Positions 40,143-61,653 of a DNA stretch of 64,000 bases are shown piece by piece. Made by a program: the position numbers and the translations under genes. This DNA is from Selaginella moellendorffii (Eukaryota > Plantae > Lycopodiophyta): NCBI RefSeq assembly GCF_000143415.4, contig NW_003314318.1:124001-188000 (forward strand), written 5' to 3'. Each line of letters starts with the position of its first letter. Position 1 is the stretch's first letter. Under the pieces are notes generated by a model that was given only the letters and a program-made list of their open reading frames with translations, was not told where the DNA came from and did no database searches.

Positions 40143-43100
40143 ATGCAGCAAGCTTGGGACAAGCCGCTGCTGCCGAATCCAGCCAGGTTGGAGGAGCTCC
40201 ATCCCTCGATCAAGAACCAGCTCGAGGTTTCTAGCAGCGACGACGACGAGCGGGATTATAGCAGCGGTGGGGATGACGAACCCGGGGCTTCGATCTTCCG
40301 GAATTATCCGGGAGTAGCCGCGACAGATAATGATCCAGGGCAGCTTTTCCAGGCGGGTGTGAATCGGATCAACAGCCTCGTGGCCGCGACCAAGGGCGGA
40401 GCATCGACGTGCTTGATCTGCCTCGAGAAAATCCGCAAGATTGATCCAATCTGGCACTGCAAGCAAGGATGTTTTGCGGTGCTTCACTTGGTTTGCATCC
40501 AGTCGTGGGCTCGCCAGGCACTCAGCACCAGCGAAAATTCTTCCGCTGGAAGAAACTCGAGCTCCAGGACTTCCCCGGCGTGCTGGCACTGTCCAAAGTG
40601 TCGACGGGACTATCCACAGGCAGAGATCCCGCGAGAGTATCGTTGCTACTGCGGCAAAGAGGTGGATCCAAGGTCCGATCCTTGGCTCACTCCACACTCT
40701 TGCGGGGAGAGATGCGAGCTGGAGCTGGGACTTTGCTCGCACACTTGTGTGCTTCTTTGCCACCCCGGGCCGTGTCCGCCATGTCCTCAGCTCGTCCAGC
40801 TGGCTTGCCACTGTGGAAAGTTGGCGGAGCTCCGGCGCTGTGGCCACAAGAGCTTCTCCTGCCAAAGGCTTTGTTCCAAGCGCCTGGGCTGTGGAGTCCA
40901 CTCCTGCGACGAGATTTGCCACGAAGGGGAGTGCAAGCCTTGCAGCAAGTTCGGTGTCCATCGCTGCCGGTGTGGGAGTGTGACTGAAGTTCGCCCCTGC
41001 TCTCAAGCCGATTTCCAGTGCGAGAGGATTTGTGACAAGGAGTTGAGCTGCAAGAAGCACGTATGCGGGAAGCAGTGTCATGCTGGGGGCTGTGGAGAGT
41101 GTGAACTTCAAGGGAGGAGGACTTGCGCCTGTGGGAAGGAGGCGTACAAGGATCTAGCCTGTGATGTTAAAGTGCCGACGTGTGGATCAACATGTGAGAA
41201 GTTACTGGCCTGTGGACTTCATCGATGTCCGGAACGGTGTCATGCTGGTTCTTGTGTGGGGACCTGTCGAGTTTTGATCAACAAGCGATGTCGCTGTGGG
41301 AGCACGGCGAAGGAGGTCTGTGTTTCTATGTGTCTGCAACTATCTATGTTTCTTAGTTGAAGTTTTGTGTAGGTTCCTTGCTACCAGGATCTTGTTTGTG
41401 AACGGAAGTGCCAACACATACGGAACTGCCAGCGTCATGCGTGCAGGCGGAGGTGCTGTGACGGGGATTGCCCACCTTGTTCTGAGGTACACGAACTTGT
41501 TTTGTTTTCTTTGGCATGACGTTAGTTTTCTGCTGGTCCTGGACAGATTTGTGGCAAAAAGTTGAGATGTGGTAATCACAAGTGTCCAGCTCCTTGTCAC
41601 AGGTATCTATGCTGGTGAGGCTCTGGTTTTATATTTTGAAATATTCTTCTTATTATACTGTTGCTGTTGTTCGTGTTCAGAGGTTTATGTGCACCTTGCC
41701 CTTTAACTGTGAAAATTTCGTGTCAATGTGGATTCACTACACTCGAGGTATGTTTTGAATTTTTTATGTTCATTTGTGAAATTCTTTTCTAGGTTCCTTG
41801 TGGCGCAGACAAAGATGTGAAGCCTCCAAAATGCTCAAAACGCTGTCAGAGACCACAAATCTGTGGTCACGGTGATTTATGCAAGGTACTCTGATAAACC
41901 TATGGCTTCTAATATTACATTACATCTTGTATTGCAGCCTCACAGATGCCATTATGGACCATGTCCGCCTTGTCAACTGCTGTGCAACAAGAAACTTGAT
42001 TGTGGTCATTCGTGTAACCAGAGGTATTATTTTGGATGCATTAGCTTTGTAGACGCTAAAATTTTTGCTTCTAGGTGTCATGGACCACGACTAACATGTC
42101 CAGTCTTGAAGGGAACCAAGAAAGAACGCAAAGCTGTGATTTCTCCCATTCCAGGCTCTCCATGTCCACCATGTTCTGTTCTTGTGTCGAGGCCGTGCAT
42201 GGGCAAACATCCGGCCGGGTCGAGGATGGTACTGGCTTATTGATTTACTGGACCGGTCTATCATTTTAACTACTGCATTGCAGGTCCCGTGTAATGACGA
42301 ATCAAGATTTTCCTGTGAAAAACCATGCGGAAATCTTTTGTCGTGCGGAAATCACTTTTGCCGAGATCTTTGTCATGTAGTTACCATCAGTCGTGCTCTA
42401 TCGAATGGAACGGTCGTGGCCTCGGGTGGTGCTCAGCAATACGATTCGTGCAGCTCTTGCCGGCTGAAATGCACAAAGGTATAACCGTTTGTTTCTTGTC
42501 GTTGATCTGAAGTGGTGTTTTGTTTCGCAGACTCGGGATCCACCTTGTCCACATCCTTGTGAGATTGGCTGCCACACTGGGAAATGCCCGGCGTGCAAGG
42601 TTTCCTTGAAGAAGTCTTGCCATTGCGGTACTCTTGTGCGCACACTGGAATGTAGCGCCTTTGGTTGCCTTTCCGAGGACGAACGCATCGAGTTGCTTTC
42701 ATGCAAAGGTCCTTGCCACAGGTTTGGCTACATAATTCTTTCCTTTAGGATACAGTCTTTGATGAACCTCTTGCATGCAGGAAGCTTGAGAACTGCTCGC
42801 ACTTGTGCTCGGAAATTTGTCATCCAGGCTCCTGTCCAAGCCTGTGCTCCAAGAAGGTATGCTACGAATCCAAAAGCAAACGAATTGAATTGACTCATGA
42901 ATCCCACCCAGGTCACTACAAGATGTGCATGTCAGCGCATACGGAAAGCGTATCAGTGCTTTGAAGTTCAAGCTGCGCGAGAGAAACAATCGGCTTTAGT
43001 TCCGTGCGATCAAGATTGTTTGAAGGCCAAAGCCTCGCAGGAGCTGGAAGAAGATTTGCAGCACAAACAAGCAGCAGACAAAGAGGTACGTGGTTCTAAC

Positions 43101-43440
43101 GATCGATTTTTCATTTATGCTTTTGCTTCTCTTTTGCAGCTACGTCGTGATGACTTGAAGAAGGTCCTGCCGAAACAACGGAAAGTACGCGCACCGAGAA
43201 GCGCTCATGGGGACTGGAAGTACAAGGTACCTTTTCTCTTTCCCTTCTTTCATGGCACTGTTCTAAATGGAAACTTGCAAATTGCAGGAGAGCTTGCAAA
43301 TTGCAATGAGATATGCTCTAGTGGTTGCTCTTGTGCTGGGAGCGGTAGCAATGGCCTACTATGGCGCCAAAGCTCTGCGAAGCCTCTCGGACTGGATGGA
43401 CGAGATCGACAACCAGAGGCCCAGAGCAAAACTTCATTGA
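40143..43440 (+). CDS. NFXL2: NF-X1-type zinc finger protein with C-terminal TM segment (NFXL2-like), multi-exon
   Basis: RING-like [29 protein letters not shown], repeated NF-X1 fingers (CHPGPCPPC), last exon [31 protein letters not shown]. Confidence 0.9.
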
Positions 43441-43491
43441 AAGTTTTCCTACTCTAGAAAGCTTTGGTTTTGGAAATAAAGAGAGATGGTT

Positions 43492-44611
43492 TCATTGGCG
43501 CTGTTTGGCTTTGTGGCATGGAATGCTGATTCCTGGACAGAGGAACTTGTAGCAAAACTTTTGTGTCCACTGTAACAGAAACGTTACTTCGTTGCTTCGT
43601 CAAAAGACTTTGATTTGATTGCTTACCTCGGTTCCAAAGTAGCTGCTAAAAACTTTGAAAGCGGGATCTCGATCTGCCAGGTAGCGGTCGTAAGCAGCTT
43701 GTTTCTCGTGGCATCTCAGACAAAAGCCTGGATCCTCATTTGGCTCCAAAGAATGCAGAGATTTCAAGTATGTTGCGACATATTGCGTATAAACTGTGTA
43801 CATTCCACCGCTCGACACCTGTTTTTGTAAGATCAGATCAATGAGGAGTTGTAAGTCGCCGAAGCTGGAGAATTTTGCTTACCTCGAGATCGGGCTCCGA
43901 AGATCCTTGATCTGATCGAAAGAAGATCATTTGCTCCGATGCGAACTTGTCTTTGTCAAAGAAACGATCAGACATTTCACTGCACCGTGCTGCAAAAGGC
44001 TGGCGAAGCAACGCGAGCGGACGAATGTACTTCTCCAAGTAGCCTTGATCTTGAAAGAGTGGTATAAAATCTACCACGCACAGGATCTTGTTCGCGCCAA
44101 ACGAGAGCAAATCTATTCCCAGTAACGGGAGATCGAAACTAGATCAAATTCGAAAGACATGTATCAGAAGCCGATGAGAAAAATGAAAACATACCTGTTG
44201 TCTGGATAGAGCAAAGCATTGAGCGCTTGGCAAGCTCTCCCGGCATCGAAGTACGTGATTCTGATACGCCGGAGCCTCCTTGACGAGTAGAGCCAGTTAT
44301 AAACATTTGCCTTGCGCGGAGAGCTTTTGAATGCGAGCTGATCGTCTAGCGGAAGAGCTTGTACATCTGGGGCCGAGTCTAGCAGCTGGAAGCAGAGAAA
44401 ATCCAAGTAAGGCTTGTAGAGAAGTGCTCCTTGTTCTATCGGCTCGAGCATTTTCATGCCTGGAAGAGACTGTGAAAGACGAGAGTTAGTCCCGAAGAAT
44501 GAAAAAAATTGATACCTTTGGAACTCTGTCCTGTGTTGTTTGTTGGTGGCTTTGAGTGCTAGCTGCCAGAGCTTCGCGCGTCACGCAGCAGCAAGCAAGA
44601 GCCCTAGCCAT
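43492..44611 (-). CDS. PUBS: Ferredoxin-dependent bilin reductase, PebA lineage (phycourobilin synthase-like), ~5 exons
   Basis: RLRRIRITYFDAG..ALNALLYPD, FDLPLLGIDLLSFG..VVDFIPLFQDQGYLEKYI, QAAYDRYLADRDPAFKVFSSYFG.E|W.QKF..KFL; closer to PebA than to HY2 by recalled motifs. Confidence 0.8.
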
Positions 44612-44636
44612 CAACTTAAAGTTGATGTAATCCCCC

Positions 44637-47213
44637 TTAAGGTGCCTTAAGTCGCCGGAGAGCTCCCATTTCTTCCTCCATTTTCCACCTTTCCTCCAGC
44701 ATCCCAGCACCAGCATAGATACTCGCCATAAGAGCACACGCTGCTCCATTCTTCTCCAGCTTCATCACAGCCTCGAAAGCCAGCCTTCCAGCTTCTACGT
44801 TGTTCCACTCTCGAGCAGCCCCCAGCAAAGTCATCCAGATGATAGCGTTTGGCTCCAGAGGCATGCTTTTTACCATCGCCACTGCATCGCTCAGTCGGTT
44901 CGCCCGGCTCAAGAGATCGATGACGCAAGTGTAGTGCTTGATTCCTGGAACCACGCCGTACTTTGGAGAAGCCATCGCCTGGAAGTACTCCATGCCTTTG
45001 TCGATCGAGCCAGCATGGCTACACGCTGTGAGAACCGATAGGAAAGTAAGCTCGTCTGGCCTTAGTCTTTCTCTTTGGAGTCCCTCGAACAAAGTGAGCA
45101 CCGTCTCGCAGTCCCCTTGACGACTATATCCATCGATGAGAGTGTTCCAAGTTACCAAGTCTCGTCTTCCTCTAGCCTCTTCGAAAACTCGTTGAGCATC
45201 GACCATGCTGCCACACTTCCCGTAAAGATCCACCAAGGAGTTGACGATCACTATCTGGTCCTTGAGTCCAGCCTCTCTGATCTCCTTCTCGAGCTCAATC
45301 CCAGCTTCTAGAGATCCCAAACCTCCACAAGCTTTAAGCGCAGCGACAAAAGTGATGGCCACTGGTTGAACGCCTCGTTGTTTCATCTGTGAGTAGAGTT
45401 CTAGAGCGAGCTGGGGTGCGCCATTCTCGACGTATCCCAGGATGAGGCAGTTCCACGAAACCACACAGCGAGCGTCCTCGTCCATGCTGCTAAAACCCTT
45501 GTGAGCGTCCACCATGCTCCCACAGTTCGCATACATATCGATCAGGCTATTGGCGACGTAGCTGCAACGGTCGTGACCATCTCTCGCTGCTCGACTGTGA
45601 ATCGCCCGGCCTTTCCTCAGGCACTCCACTTTCAGATCTTTTCCATCGACTTCTCTCGCGGCTAGAAGAGCACAGGCCTTGAGAGCAGCCACAATGGTCA
45701 CTCCATCCGCTTCAACACGGCCTTCGTTCTCCATTCGACTGTAAAGCTCGAGAGCTAGCTCTGGATTGCCACTTTCAGCATTTCCTAGGATAATCGCGGT
45801 CCAGGACACCACGCTCTTATGCCGAATTCTCTCGAAGCTTTTCAGTGCTTCAGCCAAGCTGCCACATTTGGAGTACATATCCACCAGCGCGTTGGCGACA
45901 AACACTGGCAGATCGTTGTCACTCCAGTGCTGAGAAATTTGCATGTGGAGTTTTCTGCCGCGTTCTAGACACTCTGTCTTCCCGGCGAGGTCTTCTTTCT
46001 CGGCGAGCTTGATACAGGCCTTGAGTGTAGCGACGAAAGTCACAGCATCTGGCGTGAAACCTTCGTCTTGCATTTGCTGGAAGAGCTTGAATGCCTGCTC
46101 ACTGTCGCCAGTCTCGGCATAACCCGCAATCATCGACGTCCAGGTGACAACGCTGCGAGGAATGCTTCCGAACACTTTGCTGGCGTCTTCCATGCTACCG
46201 CACTTGGCATATAAGTCCAGCAGAGCACTCGCCACAAACTCGTGTGAGAGATGACGGCCCCTGGAAGCCTGTGAGTGAAAAGCTCGCGCTTTGTTCAAGC
46301 ATTCGAGCTTGACGAGCTTCCCCTGGACAAGCACACCTTGTTCCTTGCCTGCCAAAGCAATGCAGGCCTTGAGCACCGCGAGATAAGTCACGTAGTTTGT
46401 ACCGCAGCCTCGTCCCTCTTCGTGTAGCATTTGCTGGAAGAGGTCCAAAGCAATCTGCCCCTCGCCACTCTCGGCATATCCCAGGATGATCGTATTCCAC
46501 GAGACAATGCTGCGATGTTTCATGCCGTCAAAAACTTGGCGTGCTTCGACCATGCTCCCACACTTGGAATACATGTCCACAAGAGCGTTGGCGAGAAACA
46601 AATGGAGCTCTCCATCACCCTCGACCGCTCTATAGTGAACAGCACGGCCCTTGTCCAAGCAATCTGCCACCTTTTGGTTCTTTCCGCCTTCTCTCGCAGC
46701 TGCCAAGCTGGAACAAGCCTTCACCGCAGCGAGAAAGGTGACATAGTTTGGAGAACAGCCGCCTGTCCGTTGCTCGTCAAGCATCCGGGAGTAAATCTCT
46801 AGCGCTGTTTTTCCCTCTCCACTCTCCGCATAGCCGAGGATCAAACAGTTCCAAGGCACCACGTTTCGCTGCTTCATGCTGTCAAAAACACGTCGAGCAT
46901 CCACCAGGCTTCCACACTTGGCGTACATGTCCACCAGCGAGCTAGCAACGAAGATGTTGTGGCAGTCACCATTTTCCAGCACAGTGGCGTGGATTTTCCT
47001 CCCTGTCTCTAAATCCCTGGAGCTACTACAGGCCTTGAGAGCACCCAAAACCACGGAGACTCTGGGCTTTATTCCCAGCTCTCGAAACCTGTTGTAGATT
47101 CGTAGCGGCTCTACCCTTTCCTTCTCTCCCGTTCTTGCTGTTCTTGATTTTGTTGTATCGGAAGTGGATCGAAAAGTGGGACGTTCGTCGAGCCGCTGGA
47201 GCTTGGTAGACAC
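44637..47213 (-). CDS. PLS-class pentatricopeptide repeat protein with E-type C-terminus (start uncertain)
   Basis: Repeated LVDMYAKCGS..ARRVFD..VVSW motifs; TFLSVLTACSHAG, HYTCVIDLLSRA, PNAIIWMTLLGA; no DYW. Confidence 0.92.
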   Translation of the reverse strand: MSTKLQRLDERPTFRSTSDTTKSRTARTGEKERVEPLRIYNRFRELGIKPRVSVVLGALKACSSSRDLETGRKIHATVLENGDCHNIFVASSLVDMYAKCGSLVDARRVFDSMKQRNVVPWNCLILGYAESGEGKTALEIYSRMLDEQRTGGCSPNYVTFLAAVKACSSLAAAREGGKNQKVADCLDKGRAVHYRAVEGDGELHLFLANALVDMYSKCGSMVEARQVFDGMKHRSIVSWNTIILGYAESGEGQIALDLFQQMLHEEGRGCGTNYVTYLAVLKACIALAGKEQGVLVQGKLVKLECLNKARAFHSQASRGRHLSHEFVASALLDLYAKCGSMEDASKVFGSIPRSVVTWTSMIAGYAETGDSEQAFKLFQQMQDEGFTPDAVTFVATLKACIKLAEKEDLAGKTECLERGRKLHMQISQHWSDNDLPVFVANALVDMYSKCGSLAEALKSFERIRHKSVVSWTAIILGNAESGNPELALELYSRMENEGRVEADGVTIVAALKACALLAAREVDGKDLKVECLRKGRAIHSRAARDGHDRCSYVANSLIDMYANCGSMVDAHKGFSSMDEDARCVVSWNCLILGYVENGAPQLALELYSQMKQRGVQPVAITFVAALKACGGLGSLEAGIELEKEIREAGLKDQIVIVNSLVDLYGKCGSMVDAQRVFEEARGRRDLVTWNTLIDGYSRQGDCETVLTLFEGLQRERLRPDELTFLSVLTACSHAGSIDKGMEYFQAMASPKYGVVPGIKHYTCVIDLLSRANRLSDAVAMVKSMPLEPNAIIWMTLLGAAREWNNVEAGRLAFEAVMKLEKNGAACALMASIYAGAGMLEERWKMEEEMGALRRLKAP

Positions 47214-48249
47214 CCAGGATGGACAGAGCCGTGAGTGAATCCACAGGCATTCTCCAGTGGATGCATGCTTGAAATCTGGATAGCTCGGGCTCCTCTGCAG
47301 GAAACCGCCAAATCTAAGTTCGAACTAAGTAAAGTGGAAGAGAAAAAAAAAAATAATCCGTCCATACCTTGTTCCTTCTGTTGTCCCACCAGAGTGAAGG
47401 ATCTTCAAAGAACTTCCGCCATAGCCGCTCCTCGCTCATTTGCATCGAGCAAGAAAACAAATGAGTTTTACGCCTTTCGAGCGCGCATCATTCAGTTCGC
47501 TGCAAATGGAAGGAACAGTCGCATGAAAAAGAAAGAAAGGAAAATACCACGGAAGAAAGAACGAAAAACCTCGTAATTTCGGTCCCTGATGCAAAATCCC
47601 GCTCGAAATATTTGCGATGAACCATTCAAAGGAAGATTAACGATCGGCGCCACACTTACCAGGCCGGAGAGCTTAAACGCTGGCTGCAAATCAAAAGAAC
47701 GCGACACAAATCAACGCATTCTTCACCCAGCGCCCTACTTGCGATAAACCCTAGTCATGAACCCTAATAACTTTTTGGCGGGTATTTGAACTCTTTTAAA
47801 AGGAGAACACAGCAGAGTTAGTAATCGCCAGCCTTTGGCGCATCCTGTGCCAAAAGGATTCTGGCCATGGAGATTGATCGTCCCATGCTGAGAGAATCAT
47901 AGGCGAGGAACCCTTTCCCGCTTCCAGGTGGTGGAGTCCATCGAGGGCTCCACCGTCAACTTGTTCCGAATGTTTTGATCTTGGAGAACTTGATCACGGT
48001 CGGATTGCTATAGATATCAGCGAGGAAGAAAACCACACTATGATTTCTTTGTGAACATCAATCTCCCTATTTATTGTCTGGTGATCTTCAAAATGTGGAG
48101 TTCGTGAGCTGATCTGAACATAGTGCATTGCAACAGTTTTTGTTCTTTAAGCATGACATGCGTGGTGGCTGTACATATATCCACCACCTTTGTGCTTTTG
48201 TACCCTAGATACCTCGTGAATATGCCCTGTTCTTGCTTCCTATATAAAT

Positions 48250-49566
48250 TCGAAGCTCTGGTGCGCCTTGGCGGTGGACAAGCACGAGTTCTTGCAGCTG
48301 GAAAGGGCAAGCATCATTCAGCGGACGGGAATACACGCACGGGACCTGCGAATTTTGGATCCATTACTCTCCAATCCTTCCACGATTCTAATCCGGGAGC
48401 GAGCCATTGTCCTCAACCTTGAGGTACTTATTATTATGCTATATTCTTGCTTCCTAATTGCTGGTTTTGTAGCATATTAAAGCCATAATCACGAGGAATG
48501 AAGTGTTAGTAAGGAATCCCAACAATGTGGATGTGGTTCCTGTTATAGAGGAGCTTAGACAAAGGCTCAATGAAAACAAGTTTGAGATTGAGGCACTGCA
48601 AGTGGCATTGGAATCCATTAACAAGTTCCTTGGTGCCCAAGTAGAGGAGCTAGAAACTCATGGATTCTCAGCTTTGGATGACCTCCTTGCCAAGGTAATG
48701 AGTGGAGATTGTCACGTTTGTTTTTATCTTGTTCTTGGCAGATCAATAGATATAACTTGAAGCGAGTGCGAACCCTCAAAGGTGGAGTTGCTGGGCTTGT
48801 TGCTCGCCTTCAAAAGGTTGCGATAAAGTATTAACTTAAGTTTGGATTAATCCTGGGGCCTTTCAGGTGAATGTGGAGCTCGAGGACCTTTTAAAAGAGG
48901 ACGATGATAATTATTTTTTTCCGGGAGCACATGAAGAGATTTTGGAGGTAAAATTTTATTTTCTTGAGAACTTATATGTTCTTCAGTGGCATTTTATGCA
49001 AATTGAGGGGATGATAACGAAGCTTAAAACGGTAAATAGTCAAGTGTCTTAATTACATTCTTCTTAGTGCTTCTTACACAGCTAAGTGAACACGTAACCG
49101 ACACTGAAAAACACATCAAAATACAGGTTTGATTTCGTTGTAATAATTTCTAACGCGTCATGCAACTCTCGCACAGATTGTCAATCGCCGAAACGGTCTC
49201 ATACAGGTCTAAATTTTTGCATAGCAATTCCTTCACTCTGTAAGTACTTTTCTTGTAGATTGGGCTCATCCTCAACGCATGCGTCCTCGCAATGTCCTTC
49301 TTTTCGATGATTGCTAGTTTCTTCGGAATGAACTTAGTTCCAAAAAGTTGGCAAATATGTTGTCATCCTAAGTTCTTCAACTTGGTAAGCTCCTGACCAG
49401 TTTCTAAACTTCTTAACGTGACAATTCTTTCCGTGCTCTTAATAAGGTGGTCATAGCATCTTTCTTTCTCTGCGTAAGTTTGTTCCTGGTTATCGTGATC
49501 TCTTTCCTCAGAAAGCATGGACTTTTGATCTTCAAAAGAAAGAGTTTACGTGAACATTATTACTAA
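48250..49566 (+). CDS. MRS2: Divergent MRS2/CorA magnesium transporter, ~9 short exons; no in-frame ATG found (possible pseudogene)
   Basis: IHARDLRILDPLLSNPSTILIRERAIVLNLE|HIKAIIT, FEIEALQVALE, LKRVRTLK, RRNGLIQ, FFGMN motif and two TM segments. Confidence 0.8.
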
Positions 49567-50189
49567 TAAAAACCAAACGATTTTAAAAGGACTAATGCTG
49601 GAGAAGGACGAGGCTGACAAGAGCTGGAAAGTGGCAGAGTACCAATACGATGGTAAGCTCTTCCTGGAAAAGTACCTACGTCGTCTATTGCGTGGGCGAG
49701 AGTATGCGGGCAAGCGCGCAGGCCAGGTGGAGTTCATGGTGGGGAACCTGTTCGGCATCGATGGGATCCTGGACAAGAGACTTCAGGAGCATGATCAAGG
49801 CCCTTGTCTTTGGTGTGTTCGTTTTCAATTTCAATTCCTATTGGGTGTGCTTTTACAAGTGCCAGGTGAAAGAAGCCAGTTGATCAGAGAAACATGGTTT
49901 AAGAATATATTTGATTACAAACGAATTAGAAATATTCATGTTAATATATTTATTAATCCAATTGATACTAAGAGAAAAAAACTAAAAAGTGTTTAGGAAA
50001 ATTTATAAATTGTAAACATGTTTATAAATTACATGATTTGTAAGCTGATACAAATTAGATGATTTTCAGCTGATTGCTCCCTCTTTATCGATCCTTACGT
50101 TTGGAGTGTGGAAGATTTCGAGGTCATGGTAGAAAATGCACGATAGTAACAAATGATCAGACTAAAGTTTTGCACATAAATTCTTTCAT

Positions 50190-50325
50190 GCTGTAAGTAT
50201 TTTTCTTGCACATGTACATTGTCATCCTCAACGCATGCCCCTTTGTAATGTTCTTCTTTTCGATGAACTTAGTTCCAAAGAAGTCGCTGTGGCAAGTGTG
50301 TTGCCATCGTAAGTTCTTTAAAATA
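50190..50325 (+). pseudogene. Duplicated fragment of the MRS2 TM1 exon
   Basis: Matches ~49240-49380 (catcctcaacgcatgc..tcttttcgatga..acttagttccaaa) with an internal deletion removing the start of the GMN motif. Confidence 0.75.
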
Positions 50326-50373
50326 CATTCTCCTACATTTCAGTGCTGCGAAGCTTTCCTGGAGCAAAAGATC

Positions 50374-51516
50374 ATGAAAGAGATGTTGCTGGCTCTCGTG
50401 CTTCTCCAAACGATGCTGACGATCTCCTCATCGAGCCGCAACATCGCCGCTCCAGATCACACCGTCGGCTCGGGAATCATTATGGTCGGCTCGCCGGATC
50501 TCGGAGACTATGGCCAGTTCCTCGTCTCTCCAGGCAAATTCATCGACAGGATCATGGTCTGGCGAGCAAAGTCTTGCATAAAATCGATAGCTCTCTGGTC
50601 GATCGATGACTCCTTCATTCAAGTGGGAAGATCGAAGGAACGAGGACCCTTGCCGGTCCAGGAGTTTGAGTTCCAGCGTGGCGAGACCATCGTCTACCTC
50701 ATGATGCACAGCAATCGTCAAAACGACTGGGGTAAGCGAGAAATCTCAAGCTCATATAACTTTTCCGCTGATCCTGTGGATCATTCCAGGGAATAGACTG
50801 GGCTGGATAGAGTTTCGAACAAACTTCAACCGATTCTTCTCTTGCGGGAATCTCCCGGGAGGCCTCATGCAGCAAATCACTCCTCCAGTCCACTCGGGCG
50901 TGATCGTCGGGGCCGCGTTTACAACAGGAGGAACTGGTGGAGACACCCACGACGTCAACTCTTTCGCCATCTTCTTCCTCAAGAACTGGAGCGCTGCCCA
51001 GCTCCAAGACGTGACCTACGCCAGCCCAGGATATCTCGAAACCATCCTCGAGACCCCAGATCCTCCATCGCGGTAAGCCGGTGTCAAGTCTAGCAAAGTC
51101 AGGCTCGCCCGAATTGTCACAGGCTTGAGAAGGAGGTGACTATGGAGTCAATGTGGACCGTGGACTCCCTCGGCGTTGACGATTTCATATGGACGACCAC
51201 GCACACTCGTATTCCAACGGTGATGATGCCGTCGTTTGACGGGACCCCGTACTGGACTTGGACGGACACGATTACGTCCTCGCTCAAGGATCGAAGGAAC
51301 GCGACTTTGGTCTGGACGAGAGGATGGGATATTTGCATGGGCCCAATCTACTTGAACCTGGGAAGAGGTATCACACTCACTAACTTCACTGGTTCTATGG
51401 TTATAAGCTTTAGCGATGGCGATTCTTTCGTTTATCCGACTAGTGGTCGCTATTCCGGCCAGCACTTCTCGGGCTTTGGCTCAGTGTGCGCCGTGGATGA
51501 AGAAAGCCATGGATAG
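50374..51516 (+). CDS. Secreted jacalin-like lectin plus aerolysin-type pore-forming protein; exons 50374-50731, 50790-51072, 51123-51516
   Basis: Two phase-compatible GT-AG introns (58 and 50 nt) join three ORFs; hydrophobic signal peptide; QEFEFQRGETI, NRLGWIEFRTN, VHSGVIVG, FAIFFLK..LQDVTY, KEVTMESMW, GRG..NFTGSMVISFSDG..YPTSGRYSG follow the Dln1/natterin-like motif order. Confidence 0.75.
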
Positions 51517-51547
51517 AATTCGATTCGATTGCAAAGAATGCGAGTTT

Positions 51548-52413
51548 TATTTGCGTGGAGTAAACTCTCTGGTCCTGTTGGTTATTGCAAATCAGCCAAC
51601 GAGAGAGATGGTGTGAAGATTTCTTCCTTGCGAGTCTCAGAAGTTTACCTCTGGGAAGCGGTATCAGCGTCTCCAGCAACGTTGTCAGATGACAAGGCAT
51701 CGTCCAGCAGCGAATCGAAGTTGAGGGACCTGGTGATGAATCGATCGGCCAGGCTGAGGTGCCTCTCGGAAACCACCGTCTGGACACGCAAGAAACGAAG
51801 AGATCCAGCGAAAAACCAATCGGAAAGAAGAGCCCACCTCTGCGATGGTGATCTTGCTGATCTCGGAGATTGTTCGCTGGATCCTTCCTTCCTCGATCGC
51901 TCCATCCTTGTCCGGTGGAGACCCAAGAGCGCGAAATCCCCCGCTGGGCAATCCCAGCCTCGACGATGGCATCCCGGCAGTCACTGGCGTGGATGGTTGC
52001 GTCGCCGCCACCACCGCTGGAGTGTTGGCCGGAGTCGGGCCAACGAGCATTCCGGGCGAAAGGCAGCCAAGGCGATGGAATCCAAAGAGAGGGCCTTTCG
52101 GCACATCGCACTGGACTTGCTGGAGGAGGAGAGTTACCTGAGACCTCAAGAGATCCTCGCCAGCGCCTGGTGTCCCCGGCGTTCCTGGCGTTCCAGGGGA
52201 AGAACAATCACACAGCGGCGCTGCCGCGGGGAAGCGAGGAGCGAGGCCAGTGATCGGCGAGTCGCTGTTAGTGAGATCCGCGAGCACTCTCCGCCGCGGG
52301 CCCTTCTTGATCTTCGTGGCGCTGCTGCTACCGCCGCCGCAAGCCGGGGGCTTCCTCGCGAGCGCTGGAGTGGAGGAATCACCTGCGTTTGCCTGGCGCG
52401 AGTGTGGATCCAT
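51548..52413 (-). CDS. Disordered plant protein with D-box-like motif (At5g66230-like family); 3' end approximate
   Basis: RRVLADLTNSDSPITGLA, TPGAGEDLLRSQVTLLLQQV, PTPANTP, ITRSLNFDS; many S/TP sites. Confidence 0.65.
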
Positions 52414-52847
52414 GGAAGAGGAGAGTCGACGGCGTGCTCGGAATCGCGAATCGAAAGAGAAGCTAGCGCTAGAAACCTAGCTCCAAGATTTTGCCAGCGA
52501 TGGGGCCTTGTTCTAAACGACCTAAAATCGAGGGACCGTTGGAATGGACCGTTGCTTCTAATCCACTTTTTTTACAAGATGTTCTACCCTAATAAATATT
52601 CTCCAGATAAAATTAATCTCATTAAATATTCGAATCGGATAGATTAATACTTTTAACCCTAAAATATTTAAACAACGTAGAATATTCGAATCGATTCGAT
52701 CTTCTTTCGATATTGGTGGTAGAGTATGTACAGCTTAGAAGCTCAAAGCTCAAGCTATGGAGTGAGAAGTCTTCTTGATGCCAAGCTCGTGATTCGTTTC
52801 TTCTTTGTGTTCTTCGTGTTCTTCGCTTGGTTCTTTCCATCGCTCTC

Positions 52848-55800
52848 CTAGAACGATGCTGAATCCATAGCTCCTCCACTTTTCAGCCTCTCCATCCTGG
52901 CTTGCAATCCCGAGAGAGCACTGTCGTCCACCGCCACCACTGCCGTCGATACTTCTCCACTCTCGGCTGCTACTTCATGTTGTTGCTGTTGCTGCTGCTG
53001 GGAGACCACCACTTCCGAGCCATAGCCTCGACTAAACGATGGCGAGGAGCCATTCGGGATCGTGATTGCCGCGGCGGTCGGAGAAGGAATGGAGCCGGCT
53101 CCAACAGCAGCCGTGGCCGCGGCCTGAATGCTTCGCATCCGTTCCCTGATGGCGTCCAAAGTTCCAGAGCTTGGAGTAGACACCGGTTGGACATCGCCTG
53201 GAAGTATGAAAGAAGACAAAGGTTTCTAGAATCAATAAAACGAGAAAGTGGGAGTACCTGACGGGAGGGGACTCTCGTAACTCTTTGGCGTGTTTATGAA
53301 CACCATCTTTTTCAGCTCTGCTGTGTCTGATTCGGCTGGAGCTTCTACTTCCTCCCTGTAGTTGTAGTTTACGTTGTTATCCAGCCCAAGAGGCTGGACA
53401 CGGCTGCTGATCGGCACAACCGACGATACCATCTTTGGCGAGCTGTGGCTTGGAGGCGATGCCGGGGGTGGAGTGACCATAGCAATGCTTGTTGGTGCTC
53501 TTCCCGCGGCAACACTCTTCTCCATCTTGGCAAGAGAGAAATATACAAGGCTCAGAACTCGAGAGAACGAACGACAACATTCTTACCTGTGCTAAACCAT
53601 TTCTTATGTACGTTCTAAACGCCTCGCTAGCATTTTGCAGCTGAGAGAAAATGTCCACCTGGACAGAGTAACAAGCGAGTTAGCGTTACCCCATATGAAT
53701 TCGAAGGTTATACCTGAGGATATAACTGAGTTATACGATACAACTCGTACAACCCAATCGTGCACGTTTGCTTGTCTCCAATCTTTTTAAAAACCGCTGC
53801 TAACTCTTGCTGTGCAAACAAAAACGAAAGTACCGATCAGCGGATGAAACTGGAAAGAGAACGGGCTTCGCTGATGTAAGTTCTATTATGCACAGAGCTA
53901 GAGAAATTTACGTAGGATGTCGTGCACTCTCCTCGTGCAATCGCACTCTGCTTACTTTCAATTGTGCCTCAGCCGTATGACCAGCAGGAGAAGCCGGCCC
54001 ATTTGACGATGAATCAACCCAATGTGTTTGGCCAGTTGGACCAGTTGGAGTGAGCATTCGCGCAGCCGCTAATGTCTGTAACAGATTGTAAGAAAACTAT
54101 ACAACAACCACAAGCAAGCTTACTTGGAGATTGAGATCAATATAAGCAAGAATGATAGGTTGAGGTTCTGTGTCGATTGGCACCATGGAAAGGTGACCCT
54201 TAATGGCTGTTCCACGAAGCTTTACTAGTTCGTGAAGAACAGTCTTCACCATCCGCAGAGGCTTATCATCGGCTCCGGCTCTGCAATCATAAAAGTTCGA
54301 ACGAGAAAACTAAAAACATGTATACTACCGTCTCCGTATTTCCTCCATCCCTAGCTCTTGAAGATACTCATGAATACTTTGCAGTAGGCGATCAAGGTCC
54401 ACCTCAAAAATAGTTGAGCCAAGGACCTGACAATCCCACTCAGTAAAGATATAAAAGATTCGAGTATACCTTTGTCAATTTGATCAAGCATTTTACGACA
54501 AGATCTGAAAACTTTTGCCCTCTCGTAGCCGCTGCTTCTTCGGATGCTACACCAGGCCATCTAGATTCTAAAGGCCGTAGAAGACGTATCAACACAACGA
54601 ATGCGGATGTGCGACCAGCATTTTCCTGCATAGGCACACACAAGGTTAAATTCATGATGCTACAGCAACGACCATACCAGTATTTTGAGCATTAGAACAT
54701 TTAGCGCTTTCAAGAGCTGGCTGCCGTCGTCCATTAATGGAACTCTTTCATCCAGTAACCACAGAAGAAGTTCTGTAATCAGACTATGCAAGGTTGCTTC
54801 TCTTACGCCGTGAGCAAGCTTTTTAAGTTGAAATGTCTAGGACAAAATAATAATGTTAGTACAGCACGTAAAATCGGACGCATGTGCAACATACCTGCAT
54901 TAGCGTGTTTAACACGTATTTGCAAGACCTTGAGGAGGCACCACCAAGTCCCATGTTGAACGTCGTAGTTACTTTCAACGTTAAAATTCGCACAAGACGA
55001 TCTGCGTCTTTTGCAAAATCATCTGTCAAGCTGGTTTCCATATCGGCAGCCATTTGACTTAGCTCGTGACAAATGAGCTTCATCCCTTCCACAACCTGAC
55101 CAAACCATGCGTGTACGTGTAAGTTAACATTCATTGAAGACTTACCTGCTCTGGTGAAGAACCAAATTCTATCGTGTCCAGAGCCTCGCTCCAATCTGAA
55201 GGACCAGCCGGCGAGGCGGATGCCAATTCGAAGTGTTCATTACCCCTACAACAGCCGAAATGTCAATAAATGAGAATATTTTCTTGCTGACCTTAGAAGT
55301 ACAGGTGGTGCAGTGATGGGTCTTGACGTGCCCTCCCCACTTTGTTCAACAGCATCGTTCCTGAACAGAATATGTGAGCAGGCGCACATTAAAAAGTATA
55401 AAGGTATACCCATTCTCACGAACTGAACGCCGTAAGGCAGCCCTTGTTTCTCCCGGTTTTCCCTCTCTCCTCTTGTCCATTTCACGGGCCTTCCACTTGA
55501 ACTTATCATCAATCATGCTCTTCTGTGCGTCCGACAACTTTCCTAAATATCTCCAGACGTCATCGCCTACATGACACAAAAGATGAAACCTTCGAAAGCA
55601 AGCAAAGAATATGACACATACCCATTATTTTGTAAACAGTTGCAAGTGTTTGCAGTGCAGCCTTACGCAAATCGCCGTCCCGTTCAGTTGTCAAAGCAGC
55701 AACCGATTGCAGAGCCTTATTCGGACCCGCAATCTGCAAAAGAAACAATGAGTTAATAATACATCTAGCAGAAGACTATGGGCTTGCCTCTACGCCATAG

Positions 55801-58800
55801 CGATCAACCATAAAACCAATGTGATCGACACTTTCGATTCTAGTTCTGTTGTTCTTTGATCGAAGGCCCTCGCAAATGTACGTAAATAGCTTTGATGCAG
55901 GGTAGATGCAACAGATGAGTCTCATCAGCTCCCGCATCTTTTCCCGAACCTTTTCAATATTATGACCAGACTGCAGGAAACATGCTCAGCTAAACTCGCA
56001 AGCATAAATGTCAATTACCTTTTCAACAAGACAAGGTAAGAAAATTGTAGCCTCAAATTCTGTTAGTGCATAGCCTTCATTTTTTAAAGCCTCCACCAAT
56101 TCTGGCAGAAAGTCTAGCACCTGAAAACTACATTTACCCAAGAAAAAAGCAGTCTTAAGATAAAATTACCTTCAGAAGGCACGTAGTATTGGATTCACAA
56201 AAACGTAAAACAATCCAGCGAAGAAGTATATCTGAAATTTCTGCAATATCCTTAGTGTGCGTAGGAATTGCCTGCGGGAAGCAAGATTATTAGAATTGTA
56301 AGAAAATAAAACACAATTTCACACCTTTTGCAGAAGCTCCAGCCCATCAACTTGCTTCTTAAAATCCGGACTCAGTAATCTTCGATGGAGATCCTCCCTG
56401 AAGTATTTCATAACGTCCGCCTGCTTGTTAAAGAGTAACATAAAAATAATATCGATGCATAAGATACCGCATACCTCAACTTCAAGTATTTGTTCTGGCC
56501 TAGGCTCCTCAAATTTATACTTGCGAGGAATTGACCGCTCGCGCTCTTCCTGCAGAAGGCTTTGTCAAATTACAAAGGATTTCAGACAGTAAAAGGCTTC
56601 AGACCTTATTCGAGTCTCTCATGTTGAAAAGTGCCTGGCCCTGTACAGCAGCATCTTGTGCAGCGATTGCTGCAGCTTGCTTTGTTACTTTTCCAACAGT
56701 TTTCTGATTCCCCGTCAAAAGCAAGACATTAAAGTATTACGGCGAGCAAAAAATACTTACTGTTCCCCTTGGAGGAGCTTTAGCGGCAGGACGTTCTGGA
56801 CCGTTACTAGTTTGTTTTCCAGTCTTCGGAAGATTGCCTTTCGACCCCGCTCTGTCCTCGGAGGCATCTGCGTATCGAGGTTAGCGTGAGAATAATTATA
56901 GAGAGATATATGTACCGATTGCTCCGGGAGATCTTTGCTTTTCTAAGATTGGAAGGACCGCCGCGAGTGCAGAACCATGCAACTCTCTTGATGCTTTATT
57001 GATCTGCCAAGAGTTATCAGGAAATGCACAAGACAAATATACAGAACAAGTTACCGCGTCAAAACCACAAACTCGAAGTAGCTCCTGTAAGGCTGCGTCT
57101 GCTGCTTTACGAACTTCTACAGATTTATCCTGATCAAAATGCACTTTCAAACAGCTCGGCAGTGCACAAAAGGAAATACAAACCTGTAGTCCTACGGAGA
57201 TTGGCTTCAAAAGATGGGTCAGCTCGGAACAGCTGACACATTTTGTCAACTGTTTTGTCACCCAATCGAACAAATCTTTTCGGCCATCAGCACATAGCTT
57301 AGCATCTATCAGAGCAGGAACAATGTATGGTAGCTGAAAATGTACGTTGTTAGGAAACATAAAGATTGAAGTAAAGAATCGTACCATTTTATCAAGCTGC
57401 AAAACCTCGGCCCATCCATCCAGCGTCTTGATAACTGCTTCTCGCATAAGTTTTTTATTGTCTCCTAGACATTTTAGAACGTCCGCGAGAACACCCTGCA
57501 CCAGCGGAAAAATTGTCGTCTCTATAACGAAACAAAGCACATAACCAACCTTACTGTTTTTGTCAACAGCAGGACCCATTGCTGCAGCTAGACTTCCAAG
57601 AGTCGAAAGTGTCATCATCACAAGGTTTTTGTTTGAATCATTCAACCGTCCTTTCAAAGCTCCAAACAATTCTCCTGAAAACTAGAAATTAGCGAATATC
57701 ATGAAAGTCAGCAGAAATTACCTGTCCCGGTCGCTTGGATTCTCTTGTTCGCCTCCTCAATTATCCGGTTTACAGTTTCTATGGACTCCTGCCGAATCTT
57801 CCATTCCGGACTTCCAAGGTTTTTCATCAAAGTTGCTGACAATTTCCCGCTGACATCTTCACGCGGTAAACCATCACTTCCAGCAATAGGAGCTCCGTCA
57901 TCAGCGCCACGGACTGTTCTTTTCGGGGCAGCGGGACCCTGAAACATTTACGACATCAATGAAGAAATCGTGAAGGGTCTGTACTACCTCATAGGGATTT
58001 TTCTCATATTCGGTATCCAAAGCACTTTGAAGAGCAGGTTTCACATCCGTCAAAAAATTCTTCAAGCCTGAAACAGAACTTAAAAACGTAAGCTTTATAT
58101 TCAACATCATTGTCTGAAAAACCTGGCCCAACAAACTTGTGAAGAACCCCAATAAGCTTGATAGTTGCATTCCTTGTGGCAGGTGCACTAGACTGCAATC
58201 CCACATCTTTGCAAAATTCTATCAAGTCCTGCATCACAAGTCGAGCATCAATACCATATCCACAAACTGAAGCAACAGTTACCTTCAACTTAATATGGCT
58301 AATGCCGAAGTCCTCGATGCCAGTAATCATCCATGACAATCCCTCGCTGAGAACTTTGGGATTTCTGTGCTCTTTCATAATCTTATACATCTGCAAGCAC
58401 CCCTGGATCAATAACATAAAAAAAATCAACAACAGATACCTTATCAAATACAAAATTTGGTCCCGCGACTTCACAAAATACGGTAAGGCACCTAGTAGCT
58501 TGAGCTCGTGTTTTGATATCCGACGATCTTTCAGCCAATCCTGACGATCCGAGGCCTCAGTTCGGACTTCAACAGATAACAAAGTCCGTCTTACCAGGTA
58601 AACAAAGCATAACTGCTTTCTTGGAAAAACTTGTTGCTCTCTCTGCTATATGGCAGACAACTTCAATAACTTTCTGCTGAACCTGAAAGAAACACGTTTG
58701 TGTAAAGAGTTTTTGAACAGTAAGAAAATACCTGGACATTTTTCTCAGCCCAGCCAGGAAGTACGGAAAGGAGTCGCACTAGAATTTCACTATCTTTGTT

Positions 58801-61653
58801 GATCTCAGGTAACCCCTCCACAGTTTCTTTAAGGGAAGTCATAGCTAAAAAAGAACAGGCTCAGAATATACAGAAATATAGTCAACGAAATCCAAACCTT
58901 CCAGGCGTTCCTTCCAGACAGCGCTTTTTAAGTTCTCAATTATTTCTGGCTGCACAATACTTCCGACTCTCGACTCAATCTCCTCTAGAGACATTTCGCC
59001 GACTTCAATATCGTCGTTTGCTTCCACTGTAGCATCTCCCTTTTTCGAGACAGTTACCTTCGTTGACCCAGTCTTTTTCACACTCTAGCACAAGGACAAG
59101 TAGTTTATGTTAGCTTCTACTCAACAAAATCACGTAATCGGTGATACCTGGGTTGGAGCAGTAGGCTTTTTGCCAGACAACAAACTCGCAGCGGACTTTT
59201 TAACAACTGCTTCCGAATTCTAAAATCACGTGTGAGAAATTAAGTCGCGAGTTTAAGTAAACACTTACTTCATCTGTGCTCCTGGCCACGACTATAGGAA
59301 AGAATAAATGTTAAGTTGCCACAAAATATCTAAGCAGTGCTACCTGAAGTGGAGCTAGGCGTAGAAGTGTTCGAACCGGGACCGGAACCAATCATTTCAG
59401 TCAGCTTCTTTCTTCTGACTTCATCAAGTTTTTCTAAAGAACGTTCAAGTGGCTTCATGCCCAAGTGCTGAAAGACGGGAGAAGGGACATTAGTCTCTAA
59501 ACAAACGAGCGAACTGATTATCCCACTTTTGCAAAAGCAGCAAGTGCCGAAAACGCTGCATCCCGTACTTCTGGAGTCCCATCATTTAAGCTCTAAAGAA
59601 ACCTTTTCAAGTAAAATATAGCATATTGCAGCGACCATAGTACCTCCATAAGAATGGGAACGTAATCTTTGTGTAACTTCATCACAGTGAGCTTGGTATT
59701 GTTCTCAATGCAGAATGTCACCCAGTTCAAACACGAAGACCGCACCGAAGGAACCTTATTCTTTGTAGCCACTCTGACATCTGGTATTCTAAGGTCAGTG
59801 TTCGTGAAATTTAATTCAAGGTCTGGCTCACCTTCGATTACATCCGCGAGAGCCACACAACCACCTGTGTGCATGCTTTGAAGAGTTTGCATCAATGCAT
59901 CGACCACCAATTGTTTTTTCTCTTTAAGCTTGTCCTGTTCATCCAAAAAAAAAAACACGAAAGAAGCGCAAAAAAGGATCAGCACAACCGCTACAACGAT
60001 GGACTTCGAAAGTCCTTTACTAACATCGTTACCAGCAAAACAGGAAGCAGAATTCTTGAACAAACAGTGAAGTCCTTACGGAGACCTGAAGCAAGATTTC
60101 CAGCTGCTTGAATAGCCTCCACAGCAACCGCAATATTTACATCCGTTATAAGCTGAAAACCATTGTCAGATAACATCAGGCAGCTTACACAATCTGTTAC
60201 CTTTTTTAAAGTACGGCAAATTTCTGTGTAATCGCCAGCAGCAAGTCTTTTTGCAGACGCAAGCTTAGTAAGTTCGGCAACTGCATCGCGCCTCTCAGAC
60301 CATTTTGCAGCTTTCTGAAAAGGAGGAACATGCATTATCACCTAGGCCATTATTCAGCTTGCTTACCACTCCATCCCAAAATGATGACTTTCCCAGTGGA
60401 GTTAAAATGTCGACAGGGTCGACCAGATCATATTCGTCTATATCTTGCACTCCTGTATAACATGCATCGCACTTGTAAGCAGCAAACAAACGTTTTTTCA
60501 ATTACCAGTAGGGGACGCTTCATCTGCTGGCGGGGCACCCGGCGATTCTATTGCTGCCTCTTGTTCAACCTCTCTCGTCTGCTCGGATCTGGCATAGACG
60601 AGATAATCTTGAGTCTCAGGTTTCAAACGAGATAACTTAATACCTTATTTTGCGCGTCGGTTTTGAGACGCCTGTTACGTTGTCCATCTCAGCCTCTATC
60701 TCTTTTTTCTGTGACGTAAGTATTAGCAACTACAACAGAGGAGATTGATTACCATTGTATCTCGCATTTTCTCAAAGAGAATGGATTTGACGGAGTCTTT
60801 TCCTATCCACCGGCATAACTCTATAGTTAGTCCCTTGGCCGAAGCTCTTACATTCTGGTCTTGATGATCAAAAAGTTCAGGGAGAATTCTAAGTATCCTT
60901 TTCGGAGGAATTATCTTAGTCCCAAATTCACTGCATTCAAGAAAGCAGATGGTTCAAGAAAAAACCTCTATTACGAAAAGGAATGCTGCCATCACCAACC
61001 TGAGAGCTTGATACATAACATCAATCGCTGGCACAACAGCCTTCGCTACCTTGTTCTTAATAGCTTTTTCCATCGTATCCTGAAAGGAAAAAAAAAATGA
61101 TGACAACCAAACCTGCAGAGAGAGAACTAGAACCAACCAGGAAAACATCCGATGCTTCAAGCTCCACCCACAACATGAATGCCGCTTGTGCCTTTTCAAT
61201 GGTTTTCGGACGGCCAGTGAGGCACTTGGCCGCAATAGAATCGCAAACCTCTTTAGCATACCTGGGTGACGAAAAGAATTTCCAAACCTGAAAGGCCAAG
61301 GAAGAGAAAAACAAAAGCAGTACCTAGAAACATCAGCGTCGGCAGCTCTCAGAAAACCTATCAAAGCATCCAACGCCTTTTCTTGTACCGCAGCATTCGA
61401 ATCGGCCACACTCTTTTTAAATAAAGGCCCTGGAATCACGAAAACTTACTGTTGAGCAACCCAAATGTGCGTGGGAGAAGAACTAGAACTCACCGAATTC
61501 CCGCAGCCGTGGATCCTTAGGATCCATAATGCTGTCACACACGCCCGCAAGATCGATGCACCCATCGTTCCTAACCTTCCAATTCTTGTGCGTCAATCTG
61601 TCCTCCCACGGCAGCTTCTTCGCCTCCTTGAGGAGCTTCTCGTCCTCCGACAT
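52848..61653 (-). CDS. MOR1: MICROTUBULE ORGANIZATION 1 / XMAP215-TOG family, many exons
   Basis: Starts MSEDEKLLKEAKKLPWEDRL; TOG/HEAT motifs (KWSERRDAV, WKERLE, WKIRQESIE); ends LSGLQARMERLKSG. Confidence 0.96.

Follow-up and report, generated by a model that had tools for sequence, protein, structure and literature searches.

A three-exon gene of Selaginella moellendorffii, annotated on one haplotype as part of a magnesium transporter, probably encodes a strongly diverged natterin-like lectin-aerolysin protein

What is encoded at positions 50374-51516 of a 64,000-nucleotide stretch of Selaginella moellendorffii DNA (contig NW_003314318.1 of assembly GCF_000143415.4, positions 124,001 to 188,000 of the forward strand; the whole stretch is called the window below), and could its product be a pore-forming toxin? 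A preliminary description, made from the letters of the sequence, had proposed a hidden gene for a secreted toxin built of a jacalin-like and an aerolysin-like module. The interval holds an intact three-exon gene of S. moellendorffii, allelic to LOC9630730 / SELMODRAFT_426445. On balance we favour the view, drawn by analogy with zebrafish Dln1 and lamprey LIP, that its product belongs, with strong divergence and a predicted signal peptide, among the natterin-like lectin-aerolysin proteins, and that it would attach to a glycan and open a beta-barrel pore.

The exons and introns are laid out as follows, in window coordinates; P0001 and P0002 stand for the database proteins XP_002987700.1 and EFJ15534.1, and L001 for the contig that carries the gene of P0001.

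50374-50731, plus strand: exon 1; its translation is identical to residues 357-475 of P0002.
50732-50789, plus strand: intron 1, GT-AG, phase 1; no differences between the haplotypes, and the same splice hexamers in L001.
50790-51072, plus strand: exon 2, placed by its translation and by matches to P0001 and P0002.
51073-51122, plus strand: intron 2, GT-AG, phase 2; the same splice hexamers in L001.
51123-51516, plus strand: exon 3, placed by its translation and by matches to P0001 and P0002.

The three-exon structure, its coordinates and its canonical, phase-compatible introns had been proposed by joining three open reading frame (ORF) fragments, and they agree with both the sequence and the two database proteins. 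Exon 1 begins with the ATG at 50374-50376, which has an A at -3, and encodes residues 1-119 together with the first base of the G120 codon. Intron 1 is 58 nucleotides long (GTAAGC...CCAG). Exon 2 completes G120, encodes residues 121-213 and ends with the first two bases of the R214 codon; its frame meets a TAA immediately if it is read on into intron 2, which is 50 nucleotides long (GTAAGC...ACAG). Exon 3 supplies the last base of R214, residues 215-344 and the TAG at 51514-51516. The codons split by the introns encode G120 and R214, all in-frame pieces translate cleanly, and the spliced coding sequence of 1035 nucleotides gives 344 amino acids and a stop. The homology to LIP and Dln1 described below passes both exon junctions unbroken (HMMER, PDB chain sequences).

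One allele of this gene is already in the databases. A word search with the uninterrupted ORF at 50197-50793, limited to its exon-1 residues, found P0001, the 344-residue product of SELMODRAFT_426445 (XP_002987700.1, 'uncharacterized protein LOC9630730'; UniProt D8SWD7, 'Jacalin-type lectin domain-containing protein'). The three exon translations match its residues 1-119, 121-213 and 215-344 at 97, 98 and 88% identity. Since the match is colinear, and since P0001 carries G120 and R214 at the junctions exactly as the split codons predict, the same splice model already stands in GenBank and RefSeq. Its contig L001 (scaffold GL377648.1, GCA_000143415.2) shares synteny with window 41592-61527, the nucleotide identity being 96.5-98.4%; as judged by sequence, the window is therefore either the second haplotype of the P0001 locus or the same locus in another assembly.

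The window copy itself has been annotated in a different way. The second member of the 90% cluster of P0001 is P0002 (EFJ15534.1, SELMODRAFT_422512), a protein of 700 residues named 'Magnesium transporter' in UniProt. The window exon translations recur in it letter for letter at residues 357-475, 477-569 and 571-700, separated by a single G and a single R, while its residues 1-356 come from the MRS2-like gene upstream (window 48222 to about 49860). The EFJ15534.1 model (window 48222-51516, plus strand) is therefore a chimera in which an MRS2-like magnesium transporter gene has been fused to the lectin-aerolysin-like gene. Upstream of 50374 the two are bridged by a frame that stays open in the window, whereas in the other haplotype it is interrupted by two stops and a 1-nucleotide deletion; this closed frame fixes MKEM as the start and rules out an upstream in-frame start, such as that of the ORF from 50206. 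The term 'hidden', used in the preliminary description, is thus true only as mis-annotation on the window haplotype, where the gene lies inside the chimeric model; its allele has the same model in GenBank and RefSeq. In the whole-protein searches reported below, P0001 and residues 357-700 of P0002 were used as references.

Two further observations concern the 5' side of the gene. The flank at 50162-50321 is a duplicate, about 70% identical, of 49209-49380, a part of the MRS2-like gene, and it carries a donor-like CG/GTAAGT; this duplicate probably led the gene predictor to fuse both genes. In addition, an intergenic insertion/deletion of 1.2 kb separates the haplotypes upstream of the gene (window 49817-49901 against L001 8176-9379); the bins on either side of it, rich in indels, diverge more than any others in the 20-kb comparison.

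To what family, then, does the protein belong? Its parts, as far as they can be delimited by comparison, are the following.

50374-50436, plus strand: predicted signal peptide, about residues 1-21, called by a hydrophobicity heuristic.
50461-51016, plus strand: jacalin-like lectin module, about residues 30-195, split by intron 1; placed by the LIP and Dln1 matches, the UniProt name and the ESM-Atlas neighbours.
50927-50965, plus strand: predicted sugar-binding loop, residues 166-178, GGTGGDTHDVNSF; placed by HMMER alignment to LIP and the site residues given in PMC6537362.
51017-51513, plus strand: putative aerolysin-type module, about residues 196-344, split by intron 2; placed by the colinear Dln1 alignment and by composition.
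51223-51357, plus strand: region of the predicted membrane-insertion hairpin, hypervariable between the alleles, residues 248-292; placed by the Dln1 alignment and the haplotype comparison.
Residues 253-256, plus strand: DGTP turn motif, aligned to the AGIP-hairpin region of Dln1.

Against 177,635 PDB sequences, the window protein (P0002, residues 357-700) has only two matches, LIP (5ZU4, E 3.6e-6) and Dln1 (4ZNO, E 4.7e-6), and the latter is one colinear HMMER alignment of residues 52-330 with Dln1 44-324. The allele P0001 matches LIP at E 2e-7 and Dln1 at E 2.1e-5. The lectin half alone (residues 22-199) again finds these two and nothing else, at the significant values of E 3.9e-5 for LIP and 2.5e-3 for Dln1. 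When the exons were searched singly, a natterin-like protein came top, at the colinear position, for exon 2 (E 0.47) and exon 3 (E 0.093), and exon 1 alone gave noise only. The ESM-Atlas feature search with the full-length allele points to the same family: its ten best family-bearing neighbours are all Jacalin + ETX_MTX2/Aerolysin clusters (0.93, 187-189 shared features), and these come from chordates, ascomycetes and streptophytes. The motifs on which the comparison with Dln1 had originally been built (RIMVW, QEFEFQRGE, RLGWIEFRTN, IFFLK..LQDVTY and FTGSMVI..PTSGRYSG) are all present and fall in the very columns that HMMER aligns to Dln1, and the homology to Dln1-type natterin-like proteins proposed from them is borne out by these alignments. 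By sequence comparison, the lectin module is homologous to the jacalin-like module of Dln1 and LIP.

The protein was also described at the outset as strongly diverged, and the searches for closer relatives agree. An exhaustive HMMER search with exon 3 against 1.84 billion representatives returned only the allele; a word search with the full-length allele against 5.8 billion clusters, among candidates of 0.55-1.75 times its length, returned only itself. Little weight attaches to the blank result of the word-index search with exon 3, in which candidates were again restricted to 0.55-1.75 times the query length. No relative appeared in metagenomes scanned with the two-allele alignment, and tblastn within the window found no paralogue.

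Among the known proteins, Dln1 (also Aep1, from zebrafish; PDB 4ZNO, 4ZNQ, 4ZNR and 5DI0) has the order of modules that is proposed here, with the jacalin-like lectin first and the aerolysin module second, and shares with the Selaginella protein the motifs (I/K)(M/I)WVW, QE(F/Y).F..GE and G.RLG.I.F.TN, a GIP-type motif before the insertion hairpin (in Selaginella a predicted one) and the C-terminal TG...I....G....Y.T.G.Y.G strands. The Selaginella protein differs in its plant origin and in having a signal-peptide-like leader, although the N-terminal offset between the two is only about 8 residues. The best-scoring solved relative is lamprey LIP (PDB 5ZU4 and 6IUL; PMC6537362), with which W39, R87 and D133 of the pocket are shared. 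The LIP chain begins at the lectin module, and the Selaginella N-terminus is about 35 residues longer (LIP W39, PDB-chain position 40, against W75).

Nor is the proposed architecture foreign to plants. A natterin-like gene, LOC9641738 'natterin-3', has already been reported in S. moellendorffii (Lima et al. 2021, PMC8402412); it comes from the same species, and the same architecture is proposed for it, but the present locus, allelic to LOC9630730, is absent from the list in that paper. The jacalin family is expanded in S. moellendorffii (PMC6362431). The amaranthin-aerolysin chimeras, such as cucumber AAT and wheat Hfr-2, likewise join a plant lectin to an aerolysin domain and have a presumed defence role; their lectin fold (amaranthin) is different, and almost all of them lack a signal peptide and are nucleocytoplasmic (PMC5554364).

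A leader of signal-peptide type had been proposed as well, and by heuristic it is there. The N-terminus reads MKE, followed by a hydrophobic core of 14 residues and then by SSSSR. The top Kyte-Doolittle 9-residue windows of the whole protein lie at residues 7-11, and the mean Kyte-Doolittle value of residues 4-17 is 2.3. This hydrophobic leader, followed by a small polar c-region, precedes the start of the LIP and Dln1 alignments, and its own start is fixed by the closed upstream frame; it is predicted to be a cleavable signal peptide. The protein contains four Cys residues, and the N-x-S/T sequons number three in the window allele and two in the other. Both features are compatible with passage through the secretory pathway and prove nothing.

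The C-terminal half is the more difficult part of the assignment. Dln1 is the top PDB match of this half for the window allele (E 0.21) and for the two-allele profile (E 1), and exon 3 alone has its top match at Dln1 262-324. In the whole-protein search, Dln1 scores 29.1 bits, 8 bits more than with the lectin half alone (20.9). The best single stretch of exon 3, again at Dln1 262-324, has an E of 2.8 over 177,635 sequences, or about 1.6e-5 per comparison; since the N-terminal half sets the natterin-like hypothesis beforehand, the C-terminal comparison is a targeted test, in which a value of about 1.6e-5 is meaningful. The alignment of the allele with LIP ends only at residue 271, beyond the W-x-T-T and GIP motifs. 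Ser and Thr make up 24% of the C-terminal half, vs 13% of the lectin half, and an alternating W-T-W-T-D-T-I-T strand stands directly after a D-G-(T/I)-P motif (DGTP in the window, DGIP in the allele), which aligns where the natterin review places AGIP as a hallmark of the pore-forming loop. Most probably, this Ser/Thr-rich, all-beta half is an aerolysin-type module that has diverged strongly. The aerolysin half proposed at the outset has in its favour the colinearity with Dln1 and the gain of 8 bits; searched by itself, it reached no significant match.

If the protein works as Dln1 and LIP do, its mechanism would likely be as follows. It would enter the secretory pathway; its lectin module would then dock on a glycan of a foreign membrane, microbial or herbivore; and the C-terminal module would oligomerise, whereupon an amphipathic hairpin (about residues 250-283) would insert into the membrane as a beta-barrel pore. 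The preliminary description had gone on to name an apoplastic defence toxin. The runs described below gave no RNA support, and both the sugar site and the predicted hairpin are altered; such a role in defence is an inference.

A number of results weigh against the reading just given, and several of them would fit another one, namely that this is a decaying or repurposed natterin-like paralogue. In that case the lectin half would be constrained and the pore half drifting, with substitutions accumulating at or above the neutral rate, and the product, if there is one, would be a plain secreted lectin, or without function, and no toxin. We consider this possible, though rather unlikely. Part of its support comes from the sugar site. 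The primary site of LIP consists of G15, W39, R87, S132, D133 and D135, and mutation of D135 to Ala abolishes binding (PMC6537362). In the HMMER alignment W39, R87 and D133 correspond to W75, R122 and D174 and are kept, D135 aligns to N176 and S132 to D171, and G15 is unmapped; the full set is thus not kept, three of the six residues match, and on this register the key Asp has become Asn. The register is backed by an equal 16-residue spacing to the conserved QD motif, but a shift that would put D174 at D135 is possible. The predicted sugar-binding loop has insertions of 4 and 2 residues. The predicted hairpin is altered too: between the GIP motif and a conserved G-R, alignment gaps of 9, 2 and 1 shorten the region by 12 residues against Dln1, and AGIP is replaced by DGTP. 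To this may be added that relatives of the protein were kept in none of the databases searched.

The comparison of the two alleles bears on the same question. The haplotypes differ at 27 of the 1143 gene positions (about 2.4%). In exons 1 and 2 the divergence is 1.1-1.4%, with five nonsynonymous and three synonymous changes and a ratio of nonsynonymous to synonymous polymorphism (pN/pS) of about 0.4-0.6; in exon 3 the divergence is 4.6%, with 15 nonsynonymous and three synonymous changes and a pN/pS of about 1.5. Such a value in exon 3, and the whole-gene pN/pS of about 1.0, are compatible with relaxed constraint. The changes are concentrated at residues 248-292 (window 51223-51357), where 11 codons differ, ten by nonsynonymous changes and one by a synonymous change, so that 10 of 45 residues are replaced, vs about 3% in the rest of the protein. 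Among them are R/M248, S/P250, L/F252 and I/T255, and the window allele gains an N-A-T sequon. The 200-nucleotide bin at 51200-51399 has 13 mismatches, against a mean of 2.55 and a standard deviation of 2.4, and is the maximum of an 11.4-kb colinear block; in the 8-kb block upstream, 13 is reached in just two bins, which are rich in indels and adjoin the 1.2-kb insertion/deletion. Yet the reading frame is full in both haplotypes, there is no indel in the 1143 nucleotides, the splice-site hexamers are identical, and the last strands (FTGSMVISFSDGDSFVYPTSGRYSG), which are the part that best matches Dln1, are invariant between the alleles, all of which argues against decay. Counts this low, moreover, do not allow relaxed constraint to be distinguished from diversifying selection or from a gene-conversion tract.

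The RNA-seq data are also to be set against a working toxin gene, at the modest weight that they can carry. Raw reads on 50250-51650 were taken from two runs, X13 and X14, of which about 12% each was covered. Neither run has reads at 50374-51190, which takes in exons 1 and 2, or across the joints, a weak negative, as it concerns two runs from unknown tissues; the transcripts spanning both junctions that the preliminary description called for are accordingly not seen there. Eight reads in each run all fall within 51190-51650, and all have their first mate on the plus strand, which in the usual stranded libraries indicates minus-strand RNA and fits the 3' end of a convergent neighbour, whose annotated coding sequence ends about 31 nucleotides beyond the stop of the lectin gene (L001). 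A contig from a third run (X1, depth 183) covers 51016-51650 unspliced, continues past 51650 towards this neighbour and has the letters of the other allele, and a further contig (X10), of low depth and unspliced over 50699-51234, looks like DNA. In antisense to the lectin gene, the transcript of the neighbour, or its 3' untranslated region, seems to run over exon 3 and intron 2. Both the silence of exons 1 and 2 and the antisense overlap would suit a decaying gene, but the sampling of two runs at 12% each speaks against resting much on them.

The same concentration of changes in the hairpin region, between haplotypes of a single plant, can be given a more ambitious interpretation. In a lycophyte, a natterin-type pore-former may have become a secreted weapon of the apoplast, the hairpin of which would be under diversifying or balancing selection. 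If so, the arms-race signature would lie in the pore-forming element itself, and the remodelled sugar site, with its Asp to Asn change and its loop insertions, would give a new glycan specificity. We regard this as distinctly improbable, if slightly less so than the last possibility, which concerns the C-terminal half.

This half, when searched alone, has no significant PDB match (Dln1 at E 0.09-1). With the C-terminal half of the allele, Dln1 is even missing from the match list, which is headed by a spurious hemocyanin match. The G(I/T)PYWTWT string (window 51280-51303, residues 253-260) mimics the repeated PYWDWT motif of mollusc hemocyanins, and such spurious PDB matches can outrank a true relative; the hemocyanin matches to GIPYWTWT were put down to a short motif shared by chance. 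Neither Pfam nor NCBIfam has a model that matches an exon, the full-length allele or a domain piece, even with E allowed up to 10; PF01419 Jacalin, PF01117 Aerolysin and PF03318 ETX_MTX2 do not reach their gathering thresholds, and the precomputed Pfam entry of the allele is '-'. In ESM-Atlas the C-terminal half alone has no usable feature match, and the structure that the Atlas models for it matches only unrelated beta folds, with template modelling (TM) scores <0.5. AlphaFold2, with only two near-identical aligned sequences, reached a predicted local distance difference test (pLDDT) score of 31.7 for the full length and 47.0 for the C-terminal half, which is unusable; the models are poor because there are no relatives to align. 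Foldseek against the PDB with the low-confidence C-terminal model gave cupins and other beta folds at E >=0.1 and was uninformative. That only the lectin half is natterin-related, the C-terminal 150 residues being an unrelated, lineage-specific beta-rich domain colinear with Dln1 by chance, would agree with the missing significance of this half and with the ESM-Atlas and Pfam nulls but is very unlikely, as the aerolysin module of Dln1 tops 177,635 PDB sequences in colinear position (for the window allele and the two-allele profile, though not for the other allele), the whole-length alignment adds its 8 bits to the lectin score, the LIP alignment of the allele runs on to residue 271, and the half has a fitting size, a fitting Ser/Thr content and an amphipathic strand.

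As for the surroundings on the 3' side, one gene remains to be listed.

About 51016-52413, minus strand: convergent neighbour, ATG at 52413; annotated product of 244 residues, no Pfam match.

Near its N-terminus this product has the string RRVLADLTN, of the D-box-like form RxxLxxxxN.

We return to the natterin-like lectin-aerolysin protein as the reading that we prefer. Lectin-aerolysin chimeras are a recurring design of eukaryotic defence, and the present locus opens no new category. PtIP-96-type insecticidal proteins of lycophytes and ferns, known from the patent literature, are said to include jacalin/aerolysin-like proteins from Selaginella. What the analysis adds is a probable architecture and mechanism for a protein that is held as 'uncharacterized' or 'jacalin-type', that has no Pfam domain and that has no detectable relatives. 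It also exposes a chimeric GenBank model, in which a 700-residue 'magnesium transporter' has swallowed a lectin gene. Further, the two haplotypes supply naturally occurring alleles whose differences lie mostly in the predicted insertion hairpin, and these could be compared directly for pore formation. Should the protein turn out to be an active, secreted pore-former, it would provide an example from an early-diverging plant for tracing the spread of this module among eukaryotes.

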